64,000 bases of DNA. Source: Penicillus capitatus. Taxonomy: Eukaryota > Plantae > Chlorophyta. Below are positions 33,809 to 64,000 of this stretch, piece by piece. The notes beneath the pieces are model-generated. The model was given only the letters and a program-made list of their open reading frames with translations. It ran no database searches and was not told where the DNA came from. The stretch covers positions 2,509,696-2,573,695 of the forward strand of contig OZ287694.1 of assembly GCA_965649825.1 (NCBI GenBank), read 5' to 3'. The position numbers and the translations under genes are program-made. Every line of letters begins with the position of its first letter. Within the stretch, counting starts at the first letter, position 1.

Positions 33809-36800
33809 ATGCAATCCCTAGCTCCGGACGAAGGACCCAGTGGCATCGGGACACCGCCCGCCTTGGGAATTGACCGTCGAACTGTAACTGAATCCACATG
33901 TGTGGAAACCTCGAGAATTGACCGTCGACCTATTACTGAAGCCACAAGCACGGAAGAGCGTGACGACCCAAGACTGTTGCGCGCTGTAGCGAAGAAGTAC
34001 AAAATCGACAGCATGAAGACATTGGTCGCGGCGTACAACTCGACGACGGATGAAAACGAAAGAGCTGTCTTACTCGGATGGTTACGCAAGTATAATGAAC
34101 GAAGCGCCGAATGCCTTGTGTCGAAGGTTGTTTTTGAGTACTCGGAACTGTCCAAAGTCACATTCTGTTCCACAAACGACGACGGCATTTTAGGAAACGT
34201 ATTCCGTACCCTTTGTTCCTGCATCTGCAAAGAAAAGGCTCTCGAACCGAATTTCGCCATCTCTCTCTGCAGCGCACTTGTGCACATCGATCCTGCCGCC
34301 TATGGTGGCGCTCCAGAGCTGGTGGCGCTAGCAATGAAGCTTCTGGCCAGTATTTCTCCGAGACCGAAGCTCGCGCGAAAGAACTTTGCGCGCCATGAAG
34401 CCACCTTTCTCGCGTTGCATCAAACTTTTTTTCTGCTTATGAACAGTAATCAAAACGAGATCAATGAAAAAGAAAAACAAGAGCTTCGTCGAACCATTGC
34501 GTCGAAGGAAGAAGAAATGGAGCTCTCGTGCGAATACTATCCTGTGAATTTTCATTTCACAGCACTTCGTCAGGCGGCAGAACACCTCAAACATAAAGAC
34601 ACTACTTCACGAGCTGCACAAATGAAACAATATCTTATTTGTGGGTTATGCGGATTCGTGTACGTTTTTCATTTCCTAAGAAATCTGGCAAAGTGTGACA
34701 TCGACCCTGAGGCTATTCAAGATGCATACAGAAGAGGTCGAGTTGCCATTGACAATATGGGAGTGGCGAAGAGACCATGGTTTGATTTGTTTCGAAGCCT
34801 GATGGGGAAAAGATTAGAATTGTCGAAGGACGAAACGAAGCTCGGGCTTTTCTTATCCGAGTTTGATGCTGCAATGGAATTGCAACAGAAGATGATAAAA
34901 GAAAAAAACTTGAAGGCTCTAAGATTCAGTATCATTCAAGAGATGAGGCTGGCGGCAAAGCAGAGTGCTAACGAAACTGTGCGTAAAGAGATCACGACAA
35001 AGCTATTGATGCTTTCGGCAAGACGTGCAATCTTTGAAGAGTGGTTTGAAGATGCAGATATCTTTACAGCTTTCTTGGATACTTTACACGAAATCCACAG
35101 AATAAGTGATGATAATCAAGAAACAACCGAAGCGTTCTTGCAAATGCGACAGTCTTGCGAGGGGCGTGCTGGAAGCACGTTGACAGCGTGGCTAGATGGT
35201 GACGCCATGGAAAACAAGCTTCAAATGCGACATCAACAAGAAGCATACGCAGAGCGCCATAAGGTCTTTGTCAAGATTGCTCGGGATGTTGGATACATCC
35301 CCTTAAACAAGATTCGGTCTAACGTCAAAGATCTGAAAGACAAATACAAGCATGACATCTTCGCTAATGTGAGTATAATCTTCATAATGTATCAATTGAA
35401 TTAAGATCATGTCCGTTTCGAAGGTGCCTTCATTGTTCGGAACGGAAGTCGGACATCACGTAAAAGAAATGGAGCATTATGTTGTCGTGTACGAAGAGGT
35501 TGAACGGACGATGATTAAAAGAAGAGAAGACCAAGCAGAGAAGGGGGAAGTAGAGGATTCGTCAACTCGAATGAAGGATCACCCAAGAGAACACTACGAA
35601 AAGAAAAAAAAGGTCGCAAAGCCCGTTTCTCTAGAGGATCTGTTTAAAACAAGATCTTTGAAACCCGGCGATCCGGAAAGGGAAGTTAAGAGGGTTCTTC
35701 TCTACGGAGATCCTGGCTCCGGAAAAACGTGTATCAGCAAGGCCATTGCACATAAGTGGGCACTAGGGGAAACGATGCAAGAGTTCGAAGTCATCTACGT
35801 CGTTCCGATCAGACGTGTTAACGTCGCAAAGTTCGAAGGACCGCAAGGCTTGACATTAAAGGGCGTGATTGCACAAGTGTGCTTCCGCGAGAGAGACGAC
35901 GTCGAATACGAAGATCTCTTGCGTCAAGTCGAAGGCGACCTCGATTCTCCCACCACTCTGCTGATGTTTGACGGATTAGATGAAGCTGGAGAAGACGTCA
36001 GAGAGCTCGTTCGGTCGGCGGAGGATCGTTTGTGCAAGCTGCTAGTACTGACGCGCCCGTACAATCTCCAACAGATACGAGCAAGAGTAGATTGCCAGTT
36101 CGAGTGCCTCGGATTCAGCGACCAGCAACTAACAAACTACGTATACAGAGAACTCCAGAAAGACGAAGCATCGAGACTCCTCCATTCTTTGCAACAGGAT
36201 CGAAGCATGTGGGAGATCGCACACACTCCGGTAACGGCGCATATTCTTTGCTCTTTGTCGAGAGAACATGGCATCACCGTTAAAGATCAAGGAAAGAGGG
36301 CGAGCACGTTTCAGATATACAACAACATGACAAATTTTATGTGGGAGAGATTTAAGGAAAAGCCCGAAGCGAGAACGGTGAACAAGGATACTGTTTTCAG
36401 CGATCTAGAGAAGATAGCTTTCGAAGCACTTCGGAGTGGACAAATACTAGTCGAAGGACGGACTGTCAAAAGCCATGCAACGTCCACAAACACCACTGCA
36501 ATCTTTAAGGAGAGTGGATTCCTTCTATTCGTTCTGGAGGGACAACAATATCAGTTTCCTCATCTCACCTTTCAAGAGTACTTTGCGGGGCGATTTATTG
36601 CTCGAAGCTTGAAAAACAAAGGTTCGGATGAGGAGAGACGAGTACTTAAGTTCATTCAAGAAGGAAAGTATAATCAAAAGAATGCTTTGACAATGTCCTT
36701 AGCAATGCACGCTTTAGCACAAAGGCGATGCACGTTTGCATTGCAAGAGTTGCTTTCGATTTTCGACGAAAACCCCGTCGAGGTTCTTGGAATACAGCAC

Positions 36801-39035
36801 TTTTTCTTAAGAATGCGAGTTCTCGAAGCGACCCTAGAAGCAGCAGACGAAGACGAATTGAAAGACCTCCTCAACGACAAACATGCAATCAAGATCGCTG
36901 TTAGTGCGCGTCAACTCCTCGTGCAGACTGTCGACGACGTTCTAATTCGTAGTATCGTGATCGAGGAGTTCCGACAACTGTCATGCGTTTTGGAGAGATT
37001 TCCTGAAATTCTCTATGACACAATTAATGAAGTGAAGATAATGCTGGCATGCAAGCATAAACTATCACGGGAAAAAATGGCGAAAACTGAAGATGCTTTG
37101 ATCCTCACAAGCTGCTCTATGAAGCAAAGTTACAACATAATGCAATTTGTCTTGACACTGGCAGAAAACGCCGATGATTGGTGCAGTTCAAAGGAATACG
37201 TGAAGAGATTTCGCTCTATCGCAGTACTAATGCCGCAGCACGCACGAGAGCTTCTGCCGATTCTGGCGAAAGGGTGTGTCGACAAAAACGCGACGGTTCG
37301 TGAGAGTGCGATGGAAGCCATAGGTTGCGTCATCACGGTGGCGCCGCAGCTCACAGGAGAGCTTCTGCCGATTCTGGAGAAAGGGTGCGTCGACAAAGAC
37401 TATCATGTGTGTCGGGAAGCGTTTAGGATCATCCATCGTGTCGTCACGGCAGCGCCCCAGCACGCTGGCGAGATTCTACCGATGCTAGAAAAATGGTGTG
37501 TCGACGAAAACTCAGAGGTGCGTTGGAATGCGATGGTGGCCATCAGTCGAATTGTTGGGGCAGCGCCGCAGCATGCTAGCGAGATACTATCGACGCTAGA
37601 AAAATGGTGCGTCGACAAAGACTTGAGCGTGCGTGTGAGTGCGATGGAAGCCATTGGTCATGTCGTGGCGGCGACGCCGTTGTACGCCGGCGAGCTTTTG
37701 CTGACGCTAGCTAAGGGATGCGTCGATGTTTCACCAGACGTGCGCGAGAAAGCGTTTGAGGCCATTGGCCACGTTGCCGCGGTTGCACCGCAGCCTGCTG
37801 GCGAACTCCTGCCGACGTTCGTGGAGAAGTGCGTCAATGAAGACTCAAACGTGCGTCGGAATGCTATGATAGCCATCGGTCGTATCGTCACGGCAGCGCC
37901 GCAGCACGCCGGCGAGGTTCTGCCGACGTTGGAAAAGTTGTGCGCCGACGAAGACATGAGCGTGCGTCGGAATGCAATGGAGGCCACCGGCCGCGTCGTT
38001 GCGGCGGCGCCCCAGAACGCCGGCGAAGTTTTGCCGACGCTAGCGGCGGCGTGCGTCGACGAAGACGTGTACGTGTGTCAGAGAGCGTTTGAGGCCATCG
38101 GCCGCGTCGTCGCTGCGGCTCCCCAGTACGCCGGCGAGGTTCTGCCGACGCTGGCGAAGGGATGTGTTCACAAAAAATGGAACCCGCGTTGGGCGGCAAT
38201 AAAAGCAATCGAAAGCGTTGTCTTGGCGGCGCCCCAGCATGCCGGCGAGATTCTGCCAACGTTGGAAAAGGCTTGCATCGACAGAGTACTGTTCGTGCGT
38301 TCTTCGGCAGTGAGAGCCATCGAAAGCGTCCTCGTGGCGGCTCCCCGGCACGCCAGCGAATTTTTGCCGACGCTGGTGCAGTTCTTCGTCGGCAAAGACG
38401 ATGATTTGCGTCGGTCGGCGATGCGAGCTATTGGCAGCGTCGTCGCGGCGGCTCCCCAGTACGCCGGCGAGCTTCTGCCGACGCTAGTCAAGGGATGCGT
38501 CAGTGTTTCATCAGACGTGCGTGAGAAAGCATTTGAAGCCATCGGCCGCGTCGTCGCGGCGGCGCCCCAGTACGCCGGCGAGCTTCTGCCGACGGTAGCC
38601 AAGGGATGCGTCAGTGTTTCATCAGACGTGCGTGAGAAAGCGTTTGAGGCCCTCGCCCGCGTCGTCGCGGCGGCGCCCCAGTACGCCGGCGAGCTTCTGC
38701 CGACGGTAGCCAAGGGATGCGTCGCCCAATTTGAGCACGAGTTTTGTTCTGCGATGGCGGCATTGAATAGTCTCAGTCCCGAGAATATTATCATTTCGGC
38801 AATGACAACTTTTCCTAAGTGTGGAACCAGCCTTTACTTCTTTTTTGTGCAGCACCCATTCACGTTGGACTCTCTTATAAAGCAAAAAGCGGTTTCTTTT
38901 GTTTTACACAAATTGTCTTCACAAAAAATTGGAACGTGGAGTAAGCATGGTGTTGATTCTTTTGTTTCGTTTGTGAGACGAGAATTTGAAGCGAGGTTTC
39001 CGGGGTTGCTGAAGCATCTAAATACGAAAGAGTAG
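33809..39035 (+). CDS. NLR-like STAND ATPase: unknown helical N-domain + NACHT + HEAT-repeat sensor (~1730 aa)
   Basis: ORFs 33788-35404 and 35409-39035 are joined in frame by a 37-nt intron at 35369-35405 (GTGAGT...TTAAG). Motifs: Walker A GDPGSGKT, Walker B LLMFDGLDE, sensor LTRP, winged-helix FPHLTFQEYFAG. Confidence 0.88.
37236..38725 (+). repeat. 13.5 tandem 111-bp (37-aa) HEAT-repeat units
   Basis: Consensus QxAGELLPTLxKxCVDxxxxVRxxAxxAIxxVVxAAP in exact 111-bp phase (37236 + 13x111 = 38679). The last three units are nearly identical at DNA level. Confidence 0.93.
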
Positions 39036-39678: not shown

Positions 39679-39833
39679 TGTTAAGAATCAAAGTTTAATC
39701 TACTTTCGACAAGTAGTTCGTCATGACGGCCGCGACTACTATATGGTTTACGTCGGTGTTCGATCTTTAGGGTCGTATCGGAATCTCACGTGCTTTCTCA
39801 AAGAGTCTTCTCAAAAGTCCCTAAGGTAGATAT

Positions 39834-39967
39834 TGTCAGAATTCGCTATGAAATAACCTCGAGAAGGAAAGTTTATTAAAAGGCAAAATGTACAAACAAA
39901 CAGTTTCATGGTCCTTTTCACAGTAGTTGTCACATCAATTCGTGGACCATCAAACCATTTTCCGACA
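39834..39967 (-). repeat. 3' LTR of element A
   Basis: Direct repeat of 44916-45050. Confidence 0.95.
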
Positions 39968-40001
39968 TGGGCACAACACCTTCCGCTGTGAATACTCCGA
40001 A
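39968..40001 (-). other. tRNA-iMet 5'-half-like sequence at the PPT position of element A
   Basis: TTCGGAGTATTCACAGCGGAAGGTGTTGTGCCCA directly precedes the 3' LTR; plant iMet 5' half is ATCAGAGTGGCGCAGCGGAAGCGTGGTGGGCCCA. Confidence 0.7.
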
Positions 40002-40003
40002 AG

Positions 40004-43000
40004 TCAGAGATGGTAACGCGTCAGCTGAGAGGAGTGGGCCAATATCGGCGGTTTGCCGAGTCCAGGTCGTCGAATTATCCGCGTCGAATCTGATCTTTGC
40101 TCTTCAACAGTGAACGGACCAATACGTTTAGGTCCGAGCTTCTTCAATGGATGATATTGCCGGCCGTGGCTGATCATGAGAACACGGTCGCCGAGACGAA
40201 GTCCCTTGGATCGTCGCTTGTGTTTCCACTCGAAACGATTCCTTTCATAGGCTTTCGAACCGAGTTGCTTCGTCCGCGCCAGTTCCCAGGCCTGCCTGAC
40301 CTCATCTTCTTGCGCAATCACGCCATTCCTGTCTAATCCTCGCATGAGCATGGACGGAGTCGTGCCGATCGCTGAACTCCATGAATTATTGATGGCATGC
40401 ACAGCTCCGTCGACGACGCCGGGCCATCCTTCAGTCGAACCATTCAGCATCCGCCGCATTCGTTCGCAGAGCGTGCCGATCATGCGCTCAGCAAGGCCTG
40501 CTCCGCGATGATGCTTGGTCGGCGTTCTTCGTGTGTCGATGCCATGTCGGGCTGCCCATCTTCTGAAGGCATCTGAGTTCCAGCTGCGAAGGGTCACTGG
40601 TTCTGCCTCGAGTCATCTGGCGAGGAGTCGCTGCTGGCGCGCCAACCGTCCCTGTGGCGCCACGCCAGCAGAACATCATTGGAGCGCAGGACGAGAGGTG
40701 TGACAGAGGTGTGACGATATGCCTTACGTAATGATGTGACCCTCCTAATCCGGGGTATTTAAACGGAGCTGCCGTGCTGTATCTGTCTAGCTATGTAAAT
40801 AGCCATTGCCGACAGAGTTTCCCTGCGCGGCTCGCCATCCGGTCCGGACTCGGCCATCGGGTCGACGTTCACACCAGCACGAGACGTTGTCTGTGCACAG
40901 CAAGTGGATTCGTCCTCATCGAGACATCCAGGCATCGAGAGCCTTTATTGCGTGTTGGGAGCCAGTACCGGGAGTTCTCATGACTTCAACGTACTTCGTC
41001 GCATCGTCGACTATCACCAGAAGATGCGATCCATCGAAAAAGGGTACGGCATGGTCGGCGACGACCCGTTCTCCGGCGTGCTGGGCAGGCTCTGTGCTCG
41101 GGAGGTCTCTCGTTTGTGAATAAGCGTTGAAAGCACAATTCGGGCATTCGTCGATGTAATTCCGAACGTCCTTCTCCATTCCTTCCCAGCGTTCGTGATC
41201 GAGGAGAAGATTCTGAATAGTCACGCGTGGTCCCCAATGGCCAAAATGGGCGTCTCGAATCCTTTGTTCGATCACGTCAAAAGACGGTCGATCGACGGCG
41301 TGCACCTTAGCATTTGATACACGGGGCTTCTTGTCTTCCGGAGGGTTCATCCTTGACAACTGGTCTGCGACTTGATTTGCATTTCCCGGCAAATAGTCGA
41401 ACGTGCACCAGTTTTCATTTGAGCATAGGTAGTCGAAGACTCGTGCTGCCCTTTTGTCCGAGCAGAACGCTTCAATGCCCTTGTTCAGAGCATCCACGAC
41501 TCCTTTGTTGTCAATGATGACTCTCGTGGGAGTCTCTCCGCGAAAGATCCGTGTGTTCTCCAGTGCCCATTTGACGGTTTTCAGTTCGCCGAGGTATGAG
41601 CTTTGATTCGGGCATGGGTCTTTGGCGGATCCAACTGCAACTGTCACCGGATCCTCTTTGTCCTTGAACGAACGCAAGTGGTATCCGCGGTGCAGACCGC
41701 TTCAATCGACGTACAACTCGTACTCGTCGGCTTCTCTACTAAGGCTCAACCGAACGCCTTGTTCGATGAGCCGCGTCCATACCTTCTTCACCTCTTCGTT
41801 CACTCAACTCCACCACGCTTCTGAGCACAACGCAGAATTTTTCTGCGCACGTATCTTCGCCTCGTTAAGCGGAATTATGAGTTGGCTTAGGCCCACGACA
41901 TGAGAACGACAGAAATTCATTGCCCCCAGAACCCTCTCTAACTGCTTGTAGTGCGAAAAGACAGGCAAGATCGCGGCTTTTGAAGCACAATACCGCTCTA
42001 AGTCAAACATACCACCACCGATGTGAAAACCAAGAAAATCTACTTCGGGAACGGAGACGATGATTTTGTCTTTGTTCAACTTGAGGCCAAACTTAGACAA
42101 ACGCTTGAGTGTAAGATGGAGCAGCCTGTCGTGTTCCTCCTGATCCTTTCCCCCGATTAGCAGGTCATCAGCGTAGACGATCACGTCGAGTCCCATGAGA
42201 ATATCCTTCATTCGCTCGACGAACCATATCGGGCTCCAGTCGATGAGGTACCACTTTCCAGACGTACGTCTCATTAAAAATATTGAACCCAAAAAGCAGA
42301 AACGTTTCATGCTTCAGTCCCACAGAGAAGAAGGCGTCTGTAATATCGAGTTTGCTGAATACACGCCATGAGGAAGGAATCGAACGAATCGTTCTAAGAG
42401 TATCGACGAAGGTGGCTCCAGTAAAGTTGCACATCGCGTTGAGGAGACGGTAGTCATTGAGCGTGCGAATCTTTTTCCCGTCTTTCTTGGGCAGGAAAAA
42501 GATCGGCGACAGGAAGACGCCGTCACTTGCCTTGACTCGCTCAATGAAACCCTTTCTCAAGAAGGATTCTAATTCCTCTCGGATACGGCGTTCGGGGACA
42601 AGATTATCAATGCGAGGCACTGTGCGTTGCCCACCGAAGAAGGGGTCACACTTCAGCCGGCATTCCCTAATGTCCACCCTAAGCGCCTTCATAGCCGGCG
42701 TCATCGAGGATCGATCTCCGGAAAACACAGATGCAAACTCACTATAGATGTCGCCTTTTACGGGAAACACCGACTTCACGGCTACGTCCTTATGTTCAGA
42801 CGGCTCTACTGGTAAAAAAACAGCAAGTCAAACGTCCCGACAACCATAAGTTGCAAACGAAAGAGCGGCCAGGGAGTACCTGTGGTTGTTCGGTCGAGCT
42901 AAAAACTTGAACCCTGATCTGCCCACAGTCAGTTATGGAAATTGTATCCAAAATGCCCTTCTTGTCGAGAGAACATAAAAGAGAAACGCACGACAAGTTT

Positions 43001-43590
43001 CCTTCGACCACCCAGGGGAGATATAAACAGACCCACTCACGACTTGGTAGAAAAACTGTTTTCCCGACAGGTAATTTCGCTAGATTTCTACGGCAAACTG
43101 GGCGTACATTCCGCTCCGTTTCCCAGAGCTGTCGAATGTTTATCCCTTCGGAGTCGCCCCCCTCCGAGGGTTTCCTCAAAAAGACGCGGAGCAGATCATC
43201 GCCCGATCCTTCAAGCGGATCGTAGCTCCAAATACTTCCAACGCAGGTATCCCAATGATAAGTTTATGCGCTGAATCGGGAACGACGAGGAAGGACACCT
43301 GACGCGTCTTCTTGCCAAGCTGAGTCCCAAGCTGGAGTACACCCAGCGTCTTTGTCACAGACCCATTGAAACCGGCCAATCTCTTCGGTTCTCCGACGTC
43401 ATGCCACAAATCACTCTCCTTGAAGCCAAGGTCGATTGCTGTCTTCAGGGACATTATGTTTACCGAACTGCCAGTATCTATCAGTCCTTTGAACTTGAGG
43501 GACTTCCCATGTTTCGACGCGAAATTGAACGATACATGCAGGCGGCGTCCAATCAGTGGGGACTCCTCTTTCCCGATAGAGCAAACAGTC
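40004..43590 (-). pseudogene. pol of element A (protease-RT-RNase H-integrase), several frameshifts and one insertion
   Basis: KFKGLIDTGSSVNIMS; LSPIFFLPKKDGKKIRTLNDYRLLN; FSKLDITDAF; VIVYADDLLIG; YLGELKTVKWAL; HFGH...CPNC; VIVDDATKY; GLAERMIGTL, split across frames. Confidence 0.9.
40618..40918. mobile_element. 301-bp insertion inside the integrase of element A
   Basis: Flanked by tcgagtcatc (40608-40617) and tcgagacatc (40919-40928). It interrupts the integrase core between WMSR and VTLRSWNSDAF. Confidence 0.55.
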
Positions 43591-44916
43591 TTTCGTTCGA
43601 CGGGGTAATCTCCTCCTCGGTTGATCCTTCGTTCTCGAAAACCTCTTCCTCTTCTTCATTGGCCCTGGACGCCGCTGACGTCGATATCTTCTTTTGCGTT
43701 TCCACATCTTTTTCGGATCGACTCAGTTCGGTCGTCTCCGTGAGACTCTCCACCAGTTCCGAGGCAAGCTCCTCTTTCCCATCGTCGTCTCCGTCGAGGA
43801 ACGTTTCTAGGGCATCAATACGCGCCCTTCGACGAGCCACCAGTTGCCGGCGGTGGGCACAAAATCCTTTCTCATTGCATGTCTTGCACGGATGTTGCTG
43901 AAAGCATTCTGAATCATCGTGCTTGTCCGTCTGGCAGACCTTGCAGTATCGGTTTCGCAGCAGTGGTCGATAGGGCTGTCTTAACACTAGCGCCTTTTCA
44001 TTTGACCCCTCTCTGTTCCTGATGTCTTTCTTAATGTCTCCAAGAATGGCCTTCATTCCCGTGAGGTCTTCATCCACTTTGGCTTCGAGTCTTGCAACAC
44101 GATCCTCAATTTTTCTCTCCGTCTTCTTTATCTGTTTACCTGCATCCTCTCTTCTCTCCACCTTCTGCTGGATTTTGGCTTTTTCGACGAACGCCATAAG
44201 GAATGCAAAGAACGCTTTGGTGACAGCTATCGGGAGCACAATTCCGGGTGTACCCAGAACCCAACACGATCCAGACTTCAGCAATGATAACACTTTGTGA
44301 ATGTACAAGACGAGTGCGCATAGGAGCGTCCATCCCAGAACACCTTTTCCTATACCAAGGATGGAGGAGAGCGTCCGGATGACATGATGCCGTTGGCCTG
44401 ATTGTCTGTCTTGTCTCCAACGCCAAGCGGGTCTGTGACAATCGTTTTAACGAACTCCCACGCGTGCCTTATCGTCCTCGCAGAAATTCCACCGGTGAGT
44501 TTTAAACAGCACCAGAGGGTGCCACATCCCTCGACCACGAAAATTTCTTCGTTTCGATCGGCTTCGGGCCAGGAGCCTGTCATCCATTGCCACCATGATC
44601 GACTGTTCTTCTTATCAGAGCTCTTCATTGTCTCTTGCTGCATTTGATGAAGTTGTCTTTGCAATTCATCAATTTGCTCTTCATATCGTTTGTTCTTCTC
44701 GGAGAGTCTAGTTATCTCGCTTCGCAGGTTCTTGTTGTCACGCAACACATCCGTGACCGGAACTCCTGACTCCTCGAACCGCTTCTGCACGTCTTGGTCT
44801 TCGTCAGGGTTTTCTTTCTGCGTAACTGCCGCTTCCGCAGGTAACAATGCCAAGCAGAAAAGTAGCAGCGTCACGCCCATATTTCGCATCCGAGTGTAGC
44901 CTCGCTCCGAAACCAT
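43553..44916 (-). pseudogene. Gag-like ORF1 of element A, in two overlapping frames
   Basis: Signal-peptide-like N-terminus, coiled coil, two hydrophobic segments, CX2CX4HX4C knuckle (CKVCQTDKHDDSEC). A -1 frame change occurs in 44352-44448. Confidence 0.7.
44904..44915 (-). promoter_or_regulatory. Primer-binding site TGGTTTCGGAGC of element A (same PBS at 45261 in C and 49417 in B)
   Basis: Adjacent to the 5' LTR; 10/12 identical to the plant iMet PBS TGGTATCAGAGC. Confidence 0.85.
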
Positions 44917-45050
44917 GTCAGAATTCGCGATGAAATAACCTCGAGAAGGAAAGTTTATTAAAAGGCAAAATGTACAAACAAACAGTTTCATGGTCCTTTT
45001 CACAGTAGTTGTCACATCAATTCGTGGACCATCAAACCCATTTTCCGACA
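44916..45050 (-). repeat. 5' LTR of element A
   Basis: Direct repeat of 39834-39967, followed directly by the PBS. Confidence 0.95.
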
Positions 45051-45092
45051 GATATGCCCTAGCATTAGATCCATCCACTTCCTGCAATGCAC

Positions 45093-47640
45093 TGTCACCA
45101 CAAAGTCGAAGAGAGAAGATGATATCATGACATAAAGCATGACGCAATTATAACGTCATGCTAGAAAACCATATAAGATGGGGTGTTTGATACAATCGAT
45201 ATCTTTTTGAAAACAAACGTCTGCCGAATTTAACCTCTTCGATATTTTCGCGTATCAAAATGGTTTCGGAGCTGCGAACCTCGAAAATCGACCTCGAAAC
45301 GTTTACCTCTATACTCGGTTCCGCGGCACTCGTCGAAGACGATTACCGCCCACGCATCAAACATGTTGTCCAGAAGCTAGAGCCGAGGTCGCCGGCCTTT
45401 GAGCTCTTCAGACAGGCGCTTGAGCGCGTCGAGCCCCATTTCCGCTCGCACGCTACTTTCCAGACGGCATTCGTAGGTGACGACGCAACTGTCCAACAAT
45501 TCTTCGCCGCCCAGGCGGCACCCACGACGGAGAACAAATGGACCATCGTGCGGGGAATAATACTCGCAGCGTGCCTAGTATCCTCGCTGTCAGCTGAAGA
45601 ACAGCTAGCGAGATGCACAAAGGGAAAAGGAGTGACATTGTCAGACTTCGTGGACAAGTACCTTGCCGCCTGTACCGTGTCCACCGCGTCCAGGGAGAAT
45701 CAGGTCAAGACATTGTACCGGAAGCTGCCGGCCAATCTCAAGAAGCTGATGCTTCACCTACCTCCGACGGCAACACCGGCCGATATGCGCATGGTGATGC
45801 GCAACATGAGCTTCTGGGAATCAGGGGCAACAGGAAGGGCTGAACCCGATGAGGATGCCATGGACATTGATCTGAGCATAATTCAAGCGAATGCCGCCAC
45901 GACGGATGGAAGGGTGATCATGAATGACGGGACGATCAATTTTTCCGCTATCACGAACGCAGGCAGAGTCATGGTTGGGGCCGGCGAGATCTGCAAGACA
46001 TCAAGACGCGAAGCACAGAACATGCTAAGGTTCCTTCAGCGAATATGCAACAACCAAGACGGACCAACAAATCAGAGGAGGCCAATGAACCAACTAAGAA
46101 GATGGGGAGGACGCCGCGCATTTGTGGCAGCAGAGGAGATCGCACCCGAAGGAAGCGGGGAACCAGTATGCGAGACGCTGAGTCAGGGAGGAGAAGAAGA
46201 CACCGAGCAAGACATGTCGCGAACCTATGCGGCACAAACGACGGGGAAAGGAAAAGAACAGAAAAAAGTGATGAAGCTTGGACTGGTCTCACAGAGCCAC
46301 CTTGGTTACCCAAGAAAGATCGACACTTTAGTCGATACAGGGGCAGAGTCCTCAATCATGTCCCTTGCGCTAGCCAAGGAACTAGGGGCTAAAATCGTAC
46401 CGGACGGGACGAGACTGCTTCTCGCCCACGGGAAGACGGCATAAGTCACCGGGAAATGCGAAATAGACGTGTCCATCGAGAAGACCACACATCCGACCTT
46501 CCGTCTGGATTGTCTGGTGCTACCGAACCCAGGGTATGATTTGCTCTTGGGGATAGACGCGATGACCAAGAACCAGATCTCGGCGCACCCACACAACAGA
46601 TCGGTAAGCATCAAAGGGCGAAACATCAAATGCCTCTTTGCGGGACCAAGAATGGACAAGGAAGTGAAGAATGGGGTCATCAGACAGGGGGACATTGGGC
46701 AATTAACAGAACGAGTTGAACATCTCCCAGCGATTAAGGGAGATAGGATTCAGGTGCCCTTGAACAAATCAGTAGTCTTGGGACCAAAAGAAAGCCGCAT
46801 GGTGAAGACACCGATCGTCATTCCGAGAACAATGGTGCACCAACGAACGCCATCGTTGCACCTCACTTCTCTGTACACCTGGGTGTACAATACGAGACCT
46901 TCTCGACCCTAACCTTGACTAACCATCGCGAGGAGCCCATTCGTATCACGGGGAAGACGACGATTTTTGAAATCCCCGCACAAACAGGAGAAGCCCAGAT
47001 GATCCGCGATTGCAATGGACAGCGACACCAGCTGCGCGGGACCAGGCAATCTTTTCCCAAGCGGCAGTAGACCAGCAGTCAGGCCTACTGTCGAGAAATC
47101 CGAAAACTGACTGCTGCGGTATGGAACAGCTGCTGATTGAATTCCCAGACGTCATCCGTGAAGGAATTGGGCGTTTTTCGGGTCGGGAGGTCGGCATCGA
47201 CGACGCACAAGGGCAGCTGCACTCAGTTTCTACCAAAGTCCCCTACACATTCGCGGCGGAGACTGCAGCATGTAGAAGGGAAATCGATCAACTAATCGAG
47301 GCCGGGGTTGTACGGAGGTTCCACGGGAAGCCGAAGCACGTCATTCCCTGGTTCTCAGTTGCGAAGAAGGACTCGCTTGAAAGGAGAGTAGTCCTCGACT
47401 TCAGAGGGCTAAACACTCTGACCGCCAGGAGGCCTGCCCTACCAATGCATCGCGAAGGGGCGGTCCAAGGTTTGTCCGGGATGTGCACTTTCGCAAAGTT
47501 CGATTTTAGGCATGGATTCTATCAAATTCCTCTGGCAGCTGACCTCCAGCCGTACTTCGTGACGATTTTCGACAAGCTGAACCTTTCGAGACCTTCTTCG
47601 AACACTATAACAAGTCTTCCGCTGTTATCGTTGGCGCGAC
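45093..47640 (+). mobile_element. Truncated Ty3/Gypsy element C (same family as B)
   Basis: Putative 5' LTR 45093-45257 (TGTCA...TCA; unverified, no 3' copy), PBS at 45261. ORF 45260-46444 holds gag (AMDID) + protease (LVDTGAESS), with a premature TAA at 46442. RT N-terminal part (IPWFSVAKKD, VLDFRGLN, KFDFRHGFYQ) then breaks off. Confidence 0.85.
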
Positions 47641-49176: not shown

Positions 49177-49414
49177 TGTCATGATGATGAAGAGCTGAAG
49201 GATGATGGTCCAATAAATGCCTCATCATCGTAAGAGGCACTGATGGCCAAACAGCTCTTAATGGCCACGTCACATCAGAACCTACCCGGCACCTACCCGG
49301 CACCTACTCAGCACCTATGAAACCCAACACTATAAAAAGGGGATTATTGTCACATTGATTATCTTTGTAAGAAACTTTGTTGCGTCTACCACCGTCACGT
49401 ATTTGCCCATGTCA
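49177..49414 (+). repeat. 5' LTR of element B
   Basis: Contains 11-bp acctacccggc repeats, TATA-like ctataaaaagg and TGTAA. Confidence 0.95.
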
Positions 49415-52400
49415 ATTGGTTTCGGAGCTGCGACTTTCGAAGATGGACTGTGAGGAGTTCACGTCCCTTCTCAACTCGGCAGCCTTCGTCGAGGACGATT
49501 ACCGCCCTCGCATCAAGTACGTGATTCAAAGGGTGGAGCCCAGATCGCCTGCCTTCGATCTGATACAGCGGGTCCTCGACCGAGTCGGACAGCGCTTTCG
49601 AACGCAGGCAGCATTCAATGAGGCCTTTTGCGGGACCCGCGGCAATAGTTTGCACTATTTTCGCCGACGAGGTTCTGCGCCTCAAAACTGAGGACATGAC
49701 CACTGTCCTCAGGAACGCTAGCTTCTGGGAGTCGAGCATGTTGACGCGAACGGACGCAGATCATGATCCCATTGACCCCGATGTGGCGACGACGCCGTTG
49801 GTCAACGTTGCCGCCGACGGAAGAGCGATCGGCAACGACGGCTCGATTAACTTTTCAGCGATCTCTAACGCTGGCAGAGTCATGGTCGGAGCCAGGGAAA
49901 TCTGCAGAACCTCCAGACGAGAGGCGCTCAACATGCTGAAGTTCTTACAAAAGATCAACAATTCGAGCAATGCATCGACAAGGCCACGAAGAGCAGCAGG
50001 CCAGTCGAGGAATGGAACGGGCGTCGTGCCTTCGCCGCAGATAAGTCTCTGCCGAAAGGAAACGAAGCACACGTCTGCGAGACCATTAGCGAGACAGAAG
50101 AAGACCCAACGGAACAGGATGTGCAGTTCGCACACACCGTTAGAGCGGTCACCAAGACCAGGAGAGTTTTAAAACTTGGTCTCGTATTTCCGAGCCATTT
50201 GGGATTTCCACGCCATATTAACGCTTTAGTTGATTTTGGCGCCGAGTCCTCCTTTGTATCCCCGGCACGAGCGAAAGAACTGGGAGTGAAGGTCAGGCCA
50301 GACGAGACCCGTCCGCTGTTGGCCCATGGAGAGACCGCGAAGGTCACCGGACGATGCGACTTCCAGGCAGCCCTGGCGCAATCCTCCGACCAGCAATTCT
50401 CCATGAGTTGCCTCGTACTACCGAGGCACGGCTATGATCTACTACTGTGCATGCGCGCGATGATCGACAGTAAGGTCTCCGCGCATCCCCACGACAGATC
50501 TATCAGCATCAGAGGCGACAGGTCAAATGCCACTTCACAGGACCGAAAGCCGACAAAAGGGCGGCTAATGAGATCGCGCATGAGAAGATATGCCACTGCA
50601 CCGAAAAAGTCGATCATCTACCGAGAATCACCGAAGAACGGCTGCAGGTGCCGTTGAACCGGTCAATCGTGCTCGGACCACGAGAGAGCAAGATGCTCAG
50701 ACGCCGAACGTGCTCCCCGGCGCACTCGTGTACAAGAGGGTTCCGACCGTGGCACCGCGATATTCGGTACACCTCGGTGTGCAGTACCACACGTTCTCAA
50801 CGCTCGCCAACCATGCCGCGGAACCAGTGAAGATAACTGGACGAACGACGATCTTGGACGTGCCCGCAAGACAAGACGTCGAGTATACCGCGTGCGATTG
50901 CAACGGAAACCCACATCCGTTGAGAAGCAACAGACCACCTTTTCCCAAACGGCAGTACGCTTGCAGTCAGGCATACTGTCGCTGAAGCCTAAAATTGGCT
51001 GCTGCAGTCTCGAACAGCTGCTGGCCCGATTCCCAAACGTACTTTGTGAAAAAATTGGACGTTTTTCGGGATGGGAGGTCGGCATCCGCGACGTACAAGG
51101 GCAACTACATTCGGTCTTTACCAAAGTTCCCTACACGTTCGCTGCTGAAACGACGGCATGCAGAAACGAGATCGACGCACTCATCGAAGCCGGAGTCGTC
51201 AGCCGATTTCACGGAAAACCGAAGCACATCATCCCCTGGTTTTCTGTTCCGAAGAAGAACTCGCTCGAGCGGCGAGTGGAGCTAGACTTTCGCGGACTCA
51301 ACACGCTGACCACAGGGAGTCCCGCGCTGCCCATGCATCGAGAAGGCGCAGTTCAGAACCTGTCCGGGATGCGCCACTATGCGCAGTTTGATTTCCGACA
51401 CGGATTCTAGCCGATACCTCTGGCACATGGCCTCCAGCCGTATTTCGTCACCGTGTCCGACCGAAAGCCCTACGCCTTCACACGGCTTCCGATGGGTTGG
51501 ATCAACTCAATGGCTTTCTTCGACCAAGATGTTAAAGAAACCATAGCGGAAGCACGAGACCAGTTGAAGCAGCAGAAGACTCGAACGGCAATCGAGAGCT
51601 ATGCCGACGACGTCTGCGTAGGAGCACGGACACAAGAAGATCTCGAGAGAGCAGTTCTCCAACTGCTGACGGTCTATGACAAATACCGGTGGACGGCATC
51701 TCCGAAGAAGTGCCAGGACGGTGTTAACGAGGTCGAGCTCCTCGGACACTGCTTCACGCCCGAAGGCGTTTTGCCCCCCAAAGCACGCTGCAGCAGTTGC
51801 CCCCTGCAGCGCCGCATCAACGAAGACCGCGGTCCGATCGTTTTCGGGACACCTTCGCACCTTGCTGGACTATTGCAAGTGCGACCTCCGCCGCAGCTTA
51901 GCGGCCCCGCTGCAGCAGTCGCTCAATGCAGCGCAGCCTCAAACGAAGACCACAGTCCGTTCGTTTTCGGGACTCTTTCGCACGTTGCTGAACTCTTGCA
52001 AGTGCGACCGCCGCAGCTTAGCGGCCCTGTCGAAACTCACGAACGCCAATACCAAAGTCATCCAACGATACTGGGCGGAGGATCCCAACCGCTGGGCCAC
52101 CCTCCTCCGCTCTCTCAACCGCATCTGGTATCACCGGTCTGACGCAGCTGGCCGTAATGTCGACCTGTATGTCGACGCTAGGATGGCTTTGGGTACGCGT
52201 TGTTCGACAGTGACTCTAAACGTCTCCTCCGCCTTCGAGCTGGCGGATTCCAACGTGAACCGTTCCGATCCAGTGGCAACGCTGAGCTACTCGGAATGAA
52301 AGAGGCGCTGAAGAAACAGGCACCTGCTCATGGGCAAACATCTCACCATCTTCACTGACGCCACCGTTGTCAAACAAGCGAGTCGAAGCAGCGAGCAGAG

Positions 52401-52900
52401 CTTCCTCGTGCAGTGTCATCTACACACCCTCAACCTCTCTGCAGGAAAGGACCAACGACGACCGAAGCTCCCGCGCTTGCGGCCACCGCACACCACAACT
52501 GCTGGCCAGTGTGGTACCTGCAGATGGAAAACTATCTGAAGACAGGTCGATGTCCCGATGACGCCAACCCCCAGTGCCAACACTTTGCCCGCCACGATTC
52601 GCCCGTCGCGCAGTCATTGAATACGTGGCAACCTATGAGGCAGTGCGTAGGCATGGACGTCATCGACCCCATGAAGCCTGACGGCTCCTCAAACTATATC
52701 ATCGCCGCAGTGAACCTCTGCACACGATTTTGTCTTCTCTCGGCATCCTCGCAAGCCAAAGCGACATCCATCATCAAACTGCTCGAGCGCTGGACAGCCC
52801 TCTTCGGCAACCCCGAGTGTCTGCAGACAGACAACGATTCAGCGCTCGTAGGCAATCAGTTATCCAATTGGATGTCGGCCCGAGGAATTCAACGCCGCAC

Positions 52901-52948
52901 CATCCCGTGATCGCACCATCCCGTGATCGCACCATCCCGTGATCGCAC
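52901..52948 (+). repeat. 3 x 16-bp tandem repeat (catcccgtgatcgcac) disrupting the element-B integrase
   Basis: Three exact copies. Confidence 0.9.
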
Positions 52949-53441
52949 TGCATAGGGACCTCCGAGCGTCTCAGCCGAGACGTCATCCGCCGTCCACACC
53001 GCCTTCAAAACTCAAGGCAAATGGACATCAGCTCTTCCCCAGATTCAGGCACTGCTAAACGCGCTTCCGAACTCGGTGACCAAACTCAGCGCCGCACAGA
53101 CCGCTTTCGGTTCTCAACCTCTCCCGCACTTCATTCCCGCGCCACTCACTTTCACCGCGCCCTTCTTGCAACTCGTTGGACCGCCATCGATCACCAGAGG
53201 CAGCACCAGCAACCACACCAACAACTGCCCCACTCTCACCGTTGCTCCGACATCCTAGTCGGCTCCCTGGTGCTGCTTTTTGACAATCAACACGCGCAGA
53301 CGCACGGCAACCAGCTTCCTCCGCGGTGGCTCGGACCGTAGACGATTCACGATACATTTTCTTCCTAACGTTACCGTTTCGTTTCTTCTTCTTCCAAGCA
53401 ACCCTTTCTCGCACATCGCGATCATCTACGACGTTTTTTCA

Positions 53442-53467
53442 ATCGGAGTTCAGCGCAGGGAAGCGAT
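53442..53467 (+). other. tRNA-iMet 5'-part-like sequence at the PPT position of element B
   Basis: ATCGGAGTTCAGCGCAGGGAAGCGAT precedes the 3' LTR; plant iMet is ATCAGAGTGGCGCAGCGGAAGCG. Confidence 0.65.
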
Positions 53468-53705
53468 TGTCATGATGATGAAGAGCTGAAGGATGATGGT
53501 CCAATAAATGCCTCATCATCGTAAGAGGCACTGATGGCCAAACAGCTCTTAATGGCCACGTCACATCAGAACCTACCCGGCACCTACCCGGCACCTACTC
53601 AGCACCTATGAAACCCAACACTATAAAAAGGGGATTATTGTCACATTGATTATCTTTGTAAGAAACTTTGTTGCGTCTACCACCGTCACGTATTTGCCCA
53701 TGTCA
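53468..53705 (+). repeat. 3' LTR of element B
   Basis: Identical direct repeat of 49177-49414. Confidence 0.95.
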
Positions 53706-53786: not shown

Positions 53787-56700
53787 CCACGTCACATCAT
53801 GTGTAACCTGACCTGTACGATCTGGAAGTGCTCTATGACGCCGGCGACACGGTCCAGCGAGGGTGGGAATGTGTCGGCGCGGTCGAGTGGATGCCGACGG
53901 ACCCTTGGTTGGAGCCCGACGGCGGCGTGCTCGGGCTGTGGCGCGACCTTTCCGGATTCGACATTTCGGCAGATTGCGGCCGACGGAGGGCCCACCGTCG
54001 GCAGACTTCGACGCAGACGGGTGCGGGACGCCTCGGGACACACCGCGGATGCCGATCGGTGCAAGCTCGTTTGGCTTTGGGCGGTGTCGTACGGAGTTGA
54101 AATCGTGGCGGTTACGTCGCATCAGGTGTAACCTGGCCTGTCAGTACGATCTGGAAGTGCACGACGACGCCGGCGACACGGTCGAGCGAGGGTGGGAATG
54201 TGTCGGCGGGGTCGAGTGGATGCCGACGGACCCTTGGTTGGAGCCCGACGGCGGCGTGCTCGGGCTGTGGCGCGACCTTTCCGGATTCGACATTTCGGCA
54301 GATTGCGGCCGACGGAGGGCCCACCGTCGGCAGACTTCGACGCAGACGGGTGCGGGACGCCTCGGGACACACCGCGGATGCCGATCGGTGCAAGCTCGTT
54401 TGGCTTTGGGCGGTGTCGTACTTGGTTGAAATCGAGGCCGTTACGTCGCATCAGGTGTAACCTGGCCTGTCAGTACGATCTGGAAGTGCACGACGACGCC
54501 GGCGACACGGTCGAGCGAGGGTGGGAATGTGTCGGCGGGGTCGAGTGGATGCCGACGGACCCTTGGTTGGAGCCCGACGGCGGCGTGCTCGGGCTGTGGC
54601 GCGACCTTTCCGGATTCGACATTTCGGCAGATTGCGGCCGACGGAGGGCCCACCGTCGGCAGACTTCGACGCAGACGGGTGCGGGACGCCTCGGGACACG
54701 CCGCGGATGCCGATCACCGGAGGCTCGTTTGGCTTTGGGTGTCGTACGGAGTTGAAATCGTGGCCGTTACGTCGCATCAGGTGTAACCTGGCCTGTCAGT
54801 ACGATCTGGAAGTGCACGATGCCGCCGGCGACACGGTCCAGCGAGGGTGGGAATGTGTCGGCGGGGTCGAGTGGATGCCGACGGACCCTTGGTTGGAGCC
54901 CGACGGCGGCGTGCTCGGGCTGTGGCGCGACCTTTCCGGATTCGACATTTCGGCAGATTGCGGCCGACGGAGGGCCCACCGTCGGCAGACTTCGACGCAG
55001 ACGGGTGCGGGACGCCTCGGGACACACCGCGGATGCCGATCACCGGAGGCTCGTTTGGCTTTGGGCGGTGTCGTACGGAGTTGAAATCGTGGCGGTTACG
55101 TCGCATCAGGTGTAACCTGGCCTGTCAGTACGATCTGGAAGTGCACGACGACGCCGGCGACACGGTCCAGCGAGGGTGGGAATGTGTCGGCGGGGTCGAG
55201 TGGATGCCGACGGACCCTTGGTTGGAGCCCGACGGCGGCGTGCTCGGGCTGTGGCGCGACCTTTCCGGATTCGACATTTCGGCAGATTGCGGCCGACGGA
55301 GGGCCCACCGTCGGCAGACTTCGACGCAGACGGGTGCGGGACGCCTCGGGACACACCGCGGATGCCGATCGGTGCAAGCTCGTTTGGCTTTGGGCGGTGT
55401 CGTACGGAGTTGAAATCGTGGCCGTTACGTCGCATCAGGTGTAACCTGGCCTGTCAGTACGATCTGGAAGTGCACGACGACGCCGGCGACACGGTCCAGC
55501 GAGGGTGGGAATGTGTCGGCGGGGTCGAGTGGATGCCGACGGACCCTTGGTTGGAGCCCGACGGCGGCGTGCTCGGGCTGTGGCGCGACCTTTCCGGATT
55601 CGACATTTCGGCAGATTGCGGCCGACGGAGGGCCCACCGTCGGCAGACTTCGACGCAGACGGGTGCGGGACGCCTCGGGACACACCGCGGATGCCGATCG
55701 GTGCAAGCTCGTTTGGCTTTGGGCGGTGTCGTACGGAGTTGAAATCGTGGCGGTTACGTCGCATCAGGTGTAACCTGGCCTGTCAGTACGATCTGGAAGT
55801 GCACGACGACGCCGGCGACACGGTCGAGCGAGGGTGGGAATGTGTCGGCGGGGTCGAGTGGATGCCGACGGACCCTTGGTTGGAGCCCGACGGCGGCGTG
55901 CTCGGGCTGTGGCGCGACCTTACCGGATTCGACATTTCGGCAGATTGCGGCCGACGGAGGGCCCACCGTCGGCAGACTTCGACGCAGACGGGTGCGGGAC
56001 GCCTCGGGACACACCGCGGATGCCGATCGGTGCAAGCTCGTTTGGCTTTGGGCGGTGTCGTACGGAGTTGAAATCGTGGCGGTTACGTCGCATCAGGTGT
56101 AACCTGGCCTGTCAGTACGATCTGGAAGTGCACGACGACGCCGGCGACACGGTCGAGCGAGGGTGGGAATGTGTCGGCGGGGTCGAGTGGATGCCGACGG
56201 ACCCTTGGTTGGAGCCCGACGGCGGCGTGCTCGGGCTGTGGCGCGACCTTTCCGGATTCGACATTTCGGCAGATTGCGGCCGACGGAGGGCCCACCGTCG
56301 GCAGTCTTCGACGCAGACGGGTGCGGGACGCCTCGGGACACACCGCGGATGCCGATCGGTGCAAGCTCGTTTGGCTTTGGGCGGTGTCGTACGGAGTTGA
56401 AATCGTGGCGGTTACGTCGCATCAGGTGTAACCTGGCCTGTCAGTACGATCTGGAAGTGCACGACGACGCCGGCGACACGGTCCAGCGAGGGTGGGAATG
56501 TGTCGGCGGGGTCGAGTGGATGCCGACGGACCCTTGGTTGGAGCCCGACGGCGGCGTGCTCGGGCTGTGGCGCGACCTTTCCGGATTCGACATTTCGGCA
56601 GATTGCGGCCGACGGAGGGCCCACCGTCGGCAGTCTTCGACGCAGACGGGTGCGGGACGCCTCGGGACACACCGCGGATGCCGATCGGTGCAAGCTCGTT

Positions 56701-62700: not shown

Positions 62701-64000
62701 TCCGGAAGTGCACGACGACGCCGGCGACACGGTCCAGCGAGGGTGGGGATGGGTCGGCGGGGTCGAGTGGATGCCGACGGACCCTTGGTTGGAGCCCGAC
62801 GGCGGCGTCCTCGGGCTGTGGCGCGGCCTTTCCGGATACGACATTTCGGCACACTGCGGCCGACGGAGGGCCGACCGTCGGCAGTCTTCGACGCAGACGG
62901 GTGCGGGACGCCTCGGGACACGCCGCGGATGCCGATCGCCGGAGGCTCGTTTGGCTCTGGGCGGTGTCGTACGGGGTTGAAATCGTGGCGGTTACGTCGC
63001 ATCAGGTGTAACCTGGCCTGTCAGTACGATCCGGAAGTGCACGACGACGCCGGCGACGCGGTCGAGCGAGGGCGGGGATGTGTCGGCGGGGTCGAGTGGA
63101 TGCTGTAGGACCCTTGGTTGGAGCCCGACGGCGGCGTCCTCGGGCTGTGGCGCGGCCTTACCGGATTCGACATTTCGGCACACTGCGGCCGACGGAGGGC
63201 CCACCGTCGGCAGTCTTCGACGCAGACGGGTGCGGGACGCCTCGGGACACGCCGCGGATGCCGATCGCCGGAGGCTCGTTTGGCTCTGGGCGGTGTCGTA
63301 CTTGGTTGAAATCGTGGCGGTTACGTCGCATCAGGTGTAACCTGGCCTGTCAGTACGATCCGGAAGTGCACGACGACGCCGGCGACACGGTCCAGCGAGG
63401 GCGGGGATGGGTCGGCGGGGTCGAGTGGATGCCGACGGACCCTTGGTTGGAGCCCGACGGCGGCGTGCTCGGGCTGTGGCGCGACCTTACCGGATTCGAC
63501 ATTTCGGCAGATTGCGGCCGACGGAGGGCCCACCGTCGGCAGACTTCGACGCAGACGGGTGCGGGACGCCTCGGGACACACCGCGGATGCCGATCACCGG
63601 AGGCTCGTTTGGCTTTGGGCGGTGTCGTACTTGGTTGAAATCGTGGCCGTTACGTCGCATCAGGTGTAACCTGGCCTGTCAGTACGATCTGGAAGTGCAC
63701 GACGACGCCGGCGACACGGTCCAGCGAGGGTGGGAATGTGTCGGCGGGGTCGAGTGGATGCCGACGGACCCTTGGTTGGAGCCCGACGGCGGCGTGCTCG
63801 GGCTGTGGCGCGACCTTACCGGATTCGACATTTCGGCAGATTGCGGCCGACGGAGGGCCCACCGTCGGCAGACTTCGACGCAGACGGGTGCGGGACGCCT
63901 CGGGACACACCGCGGATGCCGATCACCGGAGGCTCGTTTGGCTTTGGGCGGTGTCGTACTTGGTTGAAATCGTGGCCGTTACGTCGCATCAGGTGTAACC
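53787..64000. repeat. 329-bp GC-rich satellite array, ~31 monomers, runs off the window end
   Basis: Period 329 (e.g. 54122, 54451; one 326-bp unit to 54777). The first monomer is diverged; two sequence subfamilies and a 2632-bp duplication are present. Confidence 0.98.

Follow-up and report, generated by a model that had tools for sequence, protein, structure and literature searches.

In the green alga Penicillus capitatus, a long terminal repeat (LTR) retrotransposon that we call element A carries a 34-nucleotide (nt) look-alike of the 5' half of the initiator tRNA-Met, in the same sense as the tRNA and at the position where a polypurine tract (PPT) is expected. The element lies in a 64,000-nt stretch of contig OZ287694.1 (assembly GCA_965649825.1, positions 2,509,696 to 2,573,695 of the forward strand; hereafter the window), and its features are collected in Table 1. 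We tentatively read the motif as a tRNA-derived plus-strand priming region, equivalent to a PPT, whose primer would be the element's own RNA, and we give this reading a probability of roughly 0.4. A first-pass annotation of the window had already described the motif and its surroundings, and its coordinates and sequence description proved accurate on the minus strand: the integrase stop codon TGA (40006-40004) is followed by CT, the motif itself and, from 39967, the 3' LTR.

The motif covers nt 1-34 of the tRNA, taking in the acceptor strand with U8, the D loop and, at its end, the CCCA of the anticodon loop, with partial mismatches at the anticodon-stem positions. Aligned with a real initiator tRNA gene, 27 of 35 columns are identical, and the T that opens the LTR agrees with the next tRNA base. 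The local alignment score is 26, against a mean of 10.5 (standard deviation, sd, 2.0) for shuffled sequences; none of 5000 shuffles reached it, and the same-sense resemblance claimed in the annotation thus withstood comparison with tRNA-Met genes from metagenomes. The annotation had also equated the first seven nt with the acceptor strand that the primer-binding site (PBS) implies, and the real tRNA genes bear this out over 7-8 nt. Reverse-complement and reversed tRNA controls remained at background (reverse-complement scores of 8-11 vs 19-26 in sense). When both strands were scanned for tRNA-half matches in 45-nt segments, the best match lay upstream of the 3' LTR of element A (score 28) and the second best upstream of the 3' LTR of another element, B2 (score 25); the next scored 23 (mean 10.3, sd 2.3). 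The resemblance to the tRNA 5' half is beyond chance and sense-specific.

The motif abuts the 3' LTR, and the similarity to the tRNA ends at the LTR edge, consistent with the anchoring proposed in the annotation. Compared with the part of the tRNA that follows the anticodon, the first 70 nt of the LTR score at or below the shuffle mean in element A, in its relatives A' and A'' and in B2, and the LTR of a further group, the outer family, gives a weak match (reached by 291/2000 shuffles). A whole tRNA spanning the LTR border, in a Helenus-like arrangement, is ruled out by LTRs with no similarity to the tRNA 3' part. ARAGORN found no tRNA genes in the window or in the related loci L001-L004, and Rfam gave no match at gathering level and no tRNA match in a permissive scan of 39900-40060; the motif is therefore neither a tRNA gene nor a folded pseudogene. 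We found no conserved RNA fold of the motif (alifold energy of only -0.66 kcal/mol, from too few sequences for covariation), and single-sequence folds differ among lineages and are no better than shuffles (z -0.9 to +0.6). The missing fold and the missing 3' half fit a role at the level of sequence or hybrid.

The absence of a clean PPT, also noted in the annotation, is plain in both elements. The longest purine run in the 36 nt between integrase stop and LTR of element A is GGAAGG, 13 nt from the LTR, and that of B2 is AGGGAAG, 5 nt from the LTR; neither element has the uninterrupted run of ~8 nt or more abutting U3 that marks a classical PPT.

Table 1. Features discussed in the text (window coordinates unless a locus is named).
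Feature	Position	Strand	Details
Sense tRNA look-alike TTCGGAGTATTCACAGCGGAAGGTGTTGTGCCCA	39968..40001	-	abuts 3' LTR, at expected PPT position
Element A 5' LTR	44916..45050	-	135 bp
Element A 3' LTR	39834..39967	-	134 bp, TGTCGG...CTGACA; begins TGTCGG at 39967
Element A target-site duplication ATATC	39829..39833 (3' side) and 45051-45055		5 bp
Element A PBS TGGTTTCGGAGC	44904..44915	-	directly after 5' LTR
Element A internal region	40004..44903	-	gag, reverse transcriptase (RVT_1), integrase zinc finger, integrase C-terminus
gag AUG at LTR/PBS junction	window 44916/44915 (-); window 45260 (+); L002 3929		A, then TGGTTTCGGAG, reading M V S E
Element B1 PBS TGGTTTCGGAGC	45261..45272	+	third element
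Element B2	49177..53705	+	LTRs 49177-49414 and 53468-53705, 238 bp, 100% identical, flanking CTAG
B2 PBS TGGTTTCGGAGC	49417-49428	+	2-nt spacer after 5' LTR
B2 tRNA look-alike ATCGGAGTTCAGCGCAGGGAAGCG	53442..53465	+	tRNA nt 2-23; 2 nt upstream of 3' LTR
U3 motif	window 39940-39955 (A LTR), 53495-53505 (B2 LTR); L002 9048-9065, 10965-10985		coordinates approximate

The two LTRs of element A are 98.5% identical and end in TGTC...GACA (TG...CA). On the element's own strand, RVT_1 (42779-41804) is followed by Integrase_H2C2 (41677-40916) and the integrase C-terminus; relatives show the order gag-asp protease, RVT_1, rve. Pfam detected no RNase H domain in element A. With its LTRs and target-site duplication, its domain order and a PBS complementary to a tRNA, element A has the features of the Ty3/gypsy type (Metaviridae-like). 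The motif-bearing elements possibly make up a small clade of compact Ty3/gypsy-like LTR retrotransposons. The copy of element A in the window is degenerate, as its coding region is frameshifted and split over several frames. In A, A' and the third element, B1, the gag start codon takes its first base from the end of the LTR and its other two from the start of the PBS; gag and the PBS have no leader between them, and the AUG falls within the initiator-tRNA binding site. Element A adjoins the 5' side of B1 (window 45051-45272), for which no LTR pair was detected.

We scanned a metagenome collection for the primer with a tRNA-shaped pattern that used only the acceptor stem implied by the PBS and the universal T-arm bases. 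It matched 45 loci, and in 25 of them (L008, L010 and 23 others) the sequence was an identical 72 nt, TTCGGAGTGGCGCAGCGGAAGCGTGGAGGGCCCATAACCCTCAGGTCCCTGGATCGAAACCAGGCTCCGAAA, which ARAGORN typed as tRNA-Met (CAT). Once CCA is appended, the PBS is exactly complementary to the final 12 nt of this sequence. We take GGGCCCATAACCC and the T loop ATCGAAA of this sequence to be hallmarks of an initiator tRNA. Eukaryotic initiator tRNAs normally have A1:U72; these genes have U1:A72. The annotation had named a plant initiator tRNA as the match, and this stands for the initiator type, as the real tRNA-Met genes agree, but not for the plant: the first pair is U1:A72 rather than A1:U72, and the contigs with matching genes (JAABU...) come from Antarctic cryptoendolithic, lichen-dominated rock metagenomes (PMC7171226). 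We infer the initiator tRNA of the window's host from the motif and from the PBS, a 12-nt sequence common to at least five elements from four families and matched 12/12 in every one of them; the gene used for comparison is that of the metagenome contigs.

Several observations were made around the tRNA genes themselves. A variant of the tRNA with a 15-nt intron after nt 37 occurs at six loci (L011, L028, L037, L045, L047 and L049), and at L028 and L047 a decayed tRNA copy lies ~250 nt upstream of the gene. Further exact PBS sites were found 2-4 kb from initiator tRNA genes (L010 865, L016 3765, L018 4515, L024 1548 and L030 2723), which may belong to truncated elements using the same primer; there were no LTR pairs in the tRNA-gene stretches of the Antarctic rock contigs that we examined.

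Protein searches yielded few relatives of element A, all in ENA metagenome assemblies. L005 and L059 are fragments truncated on the 3' side, the contigs of L006 and L007 are short and lack a 3' end, and the viral contig collection contained no relatives of the element. A' (L002, L003 and L004; ERZ26696514, a sample other than the window's) has 58-60% integrase amino-acid identity to A and the same PBS core. Its sequence upstream of the 3' LTR is CTTTCGGAGTTAGCGCTTGGAAGGTGATGTGCCCA, followed by TGTCAG of the LTR, and ~75 nt of unrelated spacer, absent from A, separate the integrase stop from the motif. In A'' (L054), which has ~77% nucleotide identity to A', the motif is TTCGGGGTTTGCGCTCGGAAGGTGATGAGCCCA, again followed by TGTCAG.

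The annotation had left the conservation of the motif to be checked in other copies of the family; we find it kept in A', in A'' and, as far as the D arm, in B2 and the outer family. Across the A lineages, TTCGG[A/G]GT, GGAAGGTG, TG.GCCCA and the TGTC that starts the LTR are invariant, with variation in the D stem and at some positions of the D loop. At 27 nt upstream of the LTR stands the acceptor-strand box TTCGGAGT, which is perfect in A and A' and matches at 7/8 positions in B2. Matches to the tRNA in family A cluster in the acceptor 5' strand (8/8), the D loop and the anticodon loop (5/5), and mismatches cluster in the anticodon stem (2/5). The three A lineages depart from the tRNA in common ways, by the loss of C23 and by GTG[A/T]TG[T/A]G in place of GTGGAGGG; their motif is therefore conserved for its own sake, beyond matching the tRNA.

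Two side observations concern the contigs of these relatives. A composite of A' nested in the reverse transcriptase gene of an outer-family element occurs three times in L002, L003 and L004 (ERZ26696514), with two of the composites ~18.5 kb apart on one contig, which suggests segmental or tandem duplication and not independent insertions. An XK-related (PF09815) gene of 409 amino acids (L054 8983-10212, minus strand) is a neighbour of the A'' fragment, which comes from the window's own sample.

A comparable motif is found in other families with the same PBS. In B2, TTTTTTCAATCGGAGTTCAGCGCAGGGAAGCGAT stands before TGTCATG and is identical to tRNA nt 2-23 at 20/24 positions, a score reached by 0/5000 shuffles. 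The outer family (L002, with a clean copy in L055) has GCGCAGTGGAAGCTT before T[G/A]TGGGG, matching the tRNA D arm at 12/13 positions (5-6/5000 shuffles reach the score); across the lineages other than A and B2, the corresponding figure is 5-20/5000. B2 and the outer family both keep GCGCAG.GGAAGC, ending 2-3 nt before the LTR, and their motif stops at the D arm (about tRNA nt 23-24), whereas that of A runs to about nt 35. The spacers at the two ends of an element are of equal length, 0 and 0 in A and 2 and 2 in B2. Control relatives in other hosts, distant in reverse transcriptase and integrase and with other PBSs, instead have classical PPTs (AAGTGGGGAGGAA before TG in L053 and TTGGAAGGAGGA before TG in L057), which align to the tRNA over only 5-11 nt, a similarity that is not significant. 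The LTRs of B2 are identical, yet its open reading frames (ORFs) are only fragments; it may be non-autonomous or recently homogenised.

We infer that the motif is captured tRNA sequence that acts in cis. It could have arisen if, during minus-strand synthesis, the reverse transcriptase switched template at the U3 border onto a packaged tRNA, copied it from an internal position as far as nt 1 and then went back to the genomic RNA. The 5' part of the tRNA would thereby be placed, in sense, immediately before U3, and the D loop, rich in purines (GCGGAAG), may then serve as the core of a PPT. Once the minus strand is made, RNase H would spare an oligoribonucleotide of the element's own RNA, ending ...GUGCCCA-3' in family A and ...GGGAAGCG-3' in B2; plus-strand synthesis would start from it, at the first LTR base in A and 2 nt before that base in B2. 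Given the position of the motif, its anchoring at the U3 border and the equal spacers at both ends, we would say that its 3' end is the end of the plus-strand primer. Priming in cis is also favoured by the tRNA departures shared among the A lineages, and by a match to the tRNA of only ~75% where the PBS matches 12/12.

Some features sit uneasily with a captured primer in cis. The 13 nt beside the LTR in family A (GTGTTGTGCCCA) are not purine-rich, which is unusual for a primer resistant to RNase H, and a plain PPT role leaves the conservation of the acceptor-strand box unexplained. Furthermore, the matches in family A cluster in those parts of the tRNA that are single-stranded once it sits on the PBS, a pattern that would suit hybridisation in trans. 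The comparison also covers only about five independent lineages, with sequence evidence throughout. A small part of the probability, less than we give to the first alternative below, is left for explanations other than those discussed here.

That first alternative, which we consider unlikely, is that the tRNA itself primes the plus strand. The initiator tRNA, or a 5' fragment of it, would anneal to the minus-strand copy of the motif, and a single tRNA would prime both strands; either pairing at the PBS would free its 5' acceptor strand, or a fragment ~24 or ~35 nt long would be cut beforehand, with the cut or end at the LTR edge. Such priming would account for a sense-specific similarity that stops at the LTR border or 2 nt short of it and for spacers of the same length at the PBS end, as well as for the placing of the matches in family A (acceptor 5' strand, D loop and anticodon loop, with the anticodon stem mismatched). 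The predicted duplex between tRNA nt 1-36 and the complement of the motif has an energy of -51 to -32 kcal/mol, compared with -21 for the 12-bp PBS duplex, and 0-1/1000 shuffles reach this value (computed with RNA parameters and unmodified bases). Typically, 5' tRNA fragments and 5' halves end about nt 23-24 and nt 35, and these are the sizes at which the motif ends in B2 and the outer family (~nt 23-24) and in A (nt 35). Internally cleaved initiator tRNA is already known as a primer in Ty5 and copia (PMC5371799). Against all this, the identity to the tRNA is only ~75%, with indels, compared with 12/12 at the PBS of every element, and the A lineages conserve common deviations from it. The motif ends at a different tRNA position in each family, which would require each to have its own cut. 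Eukaryotic initiator tRNAs also usually carry m1G9 and m2,2G26, which hinder pairing, although this holds for eukaryotes generally and may not apply to the present host. Finally, the literature that we searched offers no precedent.

It is less probable again that the motif works through protein, imitating a part of the tRNA that is bound by Gag/nucleocapsid, by the reverse transcriptase-integrase or by a host factor, and so serving packaging or primer placement. The sense orientation fits mimicry, and with the gag AUG in the PBS there is no 5' leader, so cis signals may need a 3' untranslated site. Same-sense mimicry of a tRNA is known from a retroviral genome (PMC5113203, PMC5689005). A mimic might be expected to fold, however, and neither the alifold energy nor the single-sequence folds reported above give any sign of it; the D stem has at most 3 pairs, and the anticodon stem lacks a 3' partner since the LTR follows. 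The strict anchoring at the LTR edge is also left unexplained.

An auxiliary site that links the ends of the RNA seems improbable. Here the box UUUCGGAG would pair with tRNA nt 66-73 as a second PBS that does not prime, akin to the bipartite PBS of Ty3, or the motif would pair with a box near the 5' end that binds the tRNA as well, as Ty1 CYC3 does with CYC5/Box 2.1. This 8-nt box is identical to the PBS core, and there are parallels in Ty3, which retains part of the PBS at the 3' end of its genome (PMC5371799), and in Ty1, whose CYC3 pairs with a stretch otherwise proposed to pair with the tRNA, Box 2.1 (PMC3592414). But the base after the box is T, in agreement with U8 of the tRNA, where the PBS has C, and in B2 the box reads ATCGGAGT, starting with A rather than T; it thus follows the 5' end of the tRNA and not the PBS. 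Bridging would account for only 8 of the 34 nt, and we found no conserved complementary partner at the 5' end. Predicted 5'-3' duplexes were no better than shuffles (p 0.09, 0.085 and 0.85), the long ones being unrealistically bulged, and the only antisense k-mer shared by A and A' was that of the terminal inverted repeat, GACATGG (pairings of short or interrupted stretches could escape these comparisons).

Lastly, a chance resemblance between a degenerate PPT and the tRNA is very improbable: any PPT with GGAAG will align to the purine-rich D loop, as L053 and L057 do over their 5-11 nt, but 0/5000 shuffles for A and B2 and 5-20/5000 in other lineages reach the scores, the sense-specific matches are the two best in 128 kb of sequence, the same pattern occurs at the same position independently in three families, and neither the acceptor box nor CCCA is a purine tract.

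The PPT of Ty3 is GAGAGAGAGGAAGA and that of Ty1 is GGGTGGTA. Like a classical PPT, the A-type motif lies directly upstream of U3, with the same expected role of setting the plus-strand start, and it has a short purine core (GGAAGG, or AGGGAAG in B2), with a T run upstream in A' and B2. Unlike a classical PPT, its purines stop short of the border, the last 13 nt in family A being mixed; the whole 24-34 nt resemble the primer tRNA in sense, and 27 nt upstream of the LTR there is a box that is conserved but not made of purines. With copia and Ty5 the elements share the tRNA species; moreover, the motif of family A has its end in the anticodon loop, the place where the primers of copia and Ty5 are cut, and the minus-strand copy of the motif resembles a half-tRNA binding site. 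In copia and Ty5, however, the site is a complement of the tRNA beside the 5' LTR and is used for the minus strand, whereas here it is same-sense and beside the 3' LTR, so that the half-tRNA relation exists only on the minus strand there. Element A also has an ordinary PBS, complementary to the tRNA 3' end.

Ty3 reportedly has a bipartite 5'-3' PBS, as described by Gabus et al. in 1998. Element A, likewise of the Ty3/gypsy type and primed by initiator tRNA, also has sequence related to the tRNA at the 3' end of its genome, close to the PPT/U3 border. The 3' PBS segment of Ty3, however, is part of U3 and complements the T and D arms of the tRNA (PMC5371799), while our motif is upstream of U3 and same-sense; a 3' PBS of the Ty3 type is thereby ruled out, with reverse-complement scores of 8-11 vs 19-26. 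A simple second PBS is ruled out as well, the box being followed by T instead of C and starting with A in B2. In Ty1, CYC3 is a short 3'-terminal sequence that pairs with CYC5/Box 2.1 (PMC3592414). Going by the wording of that paper rather than by the Ty1 sequence, CYC3 would have the sense of a segment of the initiator tRNA if CYC5 is Box 2.1; the motif differs in that no conserved 5' partner was found for it.

Two other cases of tRNA-like sequence in retroelements are worth comparing. The tRNA-like element of HIV-1 is folded, lies beside the PBS in the 5' untranslated region and binds LysRS (PMC5113203, PMC5689005). It shares with our motif the same-sense mimicry of the primer tRNA in a retroelement genome; the motif differs in having no supported fold and in lying at the PPT position. 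Helenus/TRIMp3 carries a tRNA-like sequence in its LTR, proposed to be an RNA polymerase III promoter (Kojima 2024, PMC10886601). This too is an LTR retrotransposon with tRNA-derived sequence, but in our elements only the 5' part of the tRNA is present, outside the LTR.

A look-alike of the primer tRNA at the plus-strand site seems to be undescribed. We found no description of a same-sense segment of the primer tRNA at the PPT position, or of a tRNA-primed plus strand, in the literature searched, where coverage was incomplete and many subscription papers could not be searched; a text search for the PBS sequence returned nothing relevant. To our knowledge, every retrovirus and LTR retrotransposon studied primes its plus strand from a purine tract of its own RNA, and the motif hints at a new priming mechanism. 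At the least, captured primer-tRNA sequence would be a new evolutionary source of a plus-strand priming site, with an atypical, partly non-purine primer end. If the tRNA itself were the primer, part of a host tRNA would have taken the place of the PPT that resists RNase H and is found in all known retroviruses and LTR retrotransposons, a new replication strategy that would link 5' tRNA fragments to retroelement biology; so far as we know, tRNA fragments have figured there mainly as 3' fragments targeting the PBS. The tRNA and the element differ at defined positions (nt 9-13, 23 and 27-30), which makes the case directly testable.

Some smaller observations remain. The 12-mer CAGCGGAAGGTG of the A motif recurs at L002 9611-9622, in a purine-rich stretch of the outer integrase ORF, where it may mark a central PPT or have arisen by chance. 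In all four families a common motif, ATGG[A/T]CC...GAAT, lies within the first 15-35 nt of U3; because some families carry it as the reverse complement (GGTCCA vs TGGACC), it looks more like a protein-binding site than an RNA signal. About 80 bp past element B2 a satellite array begins (53789-64000) and runs off the end of the window, with 31 copies of a GC-rich (about 66%), 329-bp unit that are 93-100% identical. Elsewhere, an intronless ORF of 1208 amino acids (35409-39035, plus strand) encodes a NACHT NTPase domain at its N terminus together with a long array of HEAT repeats, the latter from ~13 tandem units of 111 bp (37248-38724), a predicted architecture that is NLR-like.

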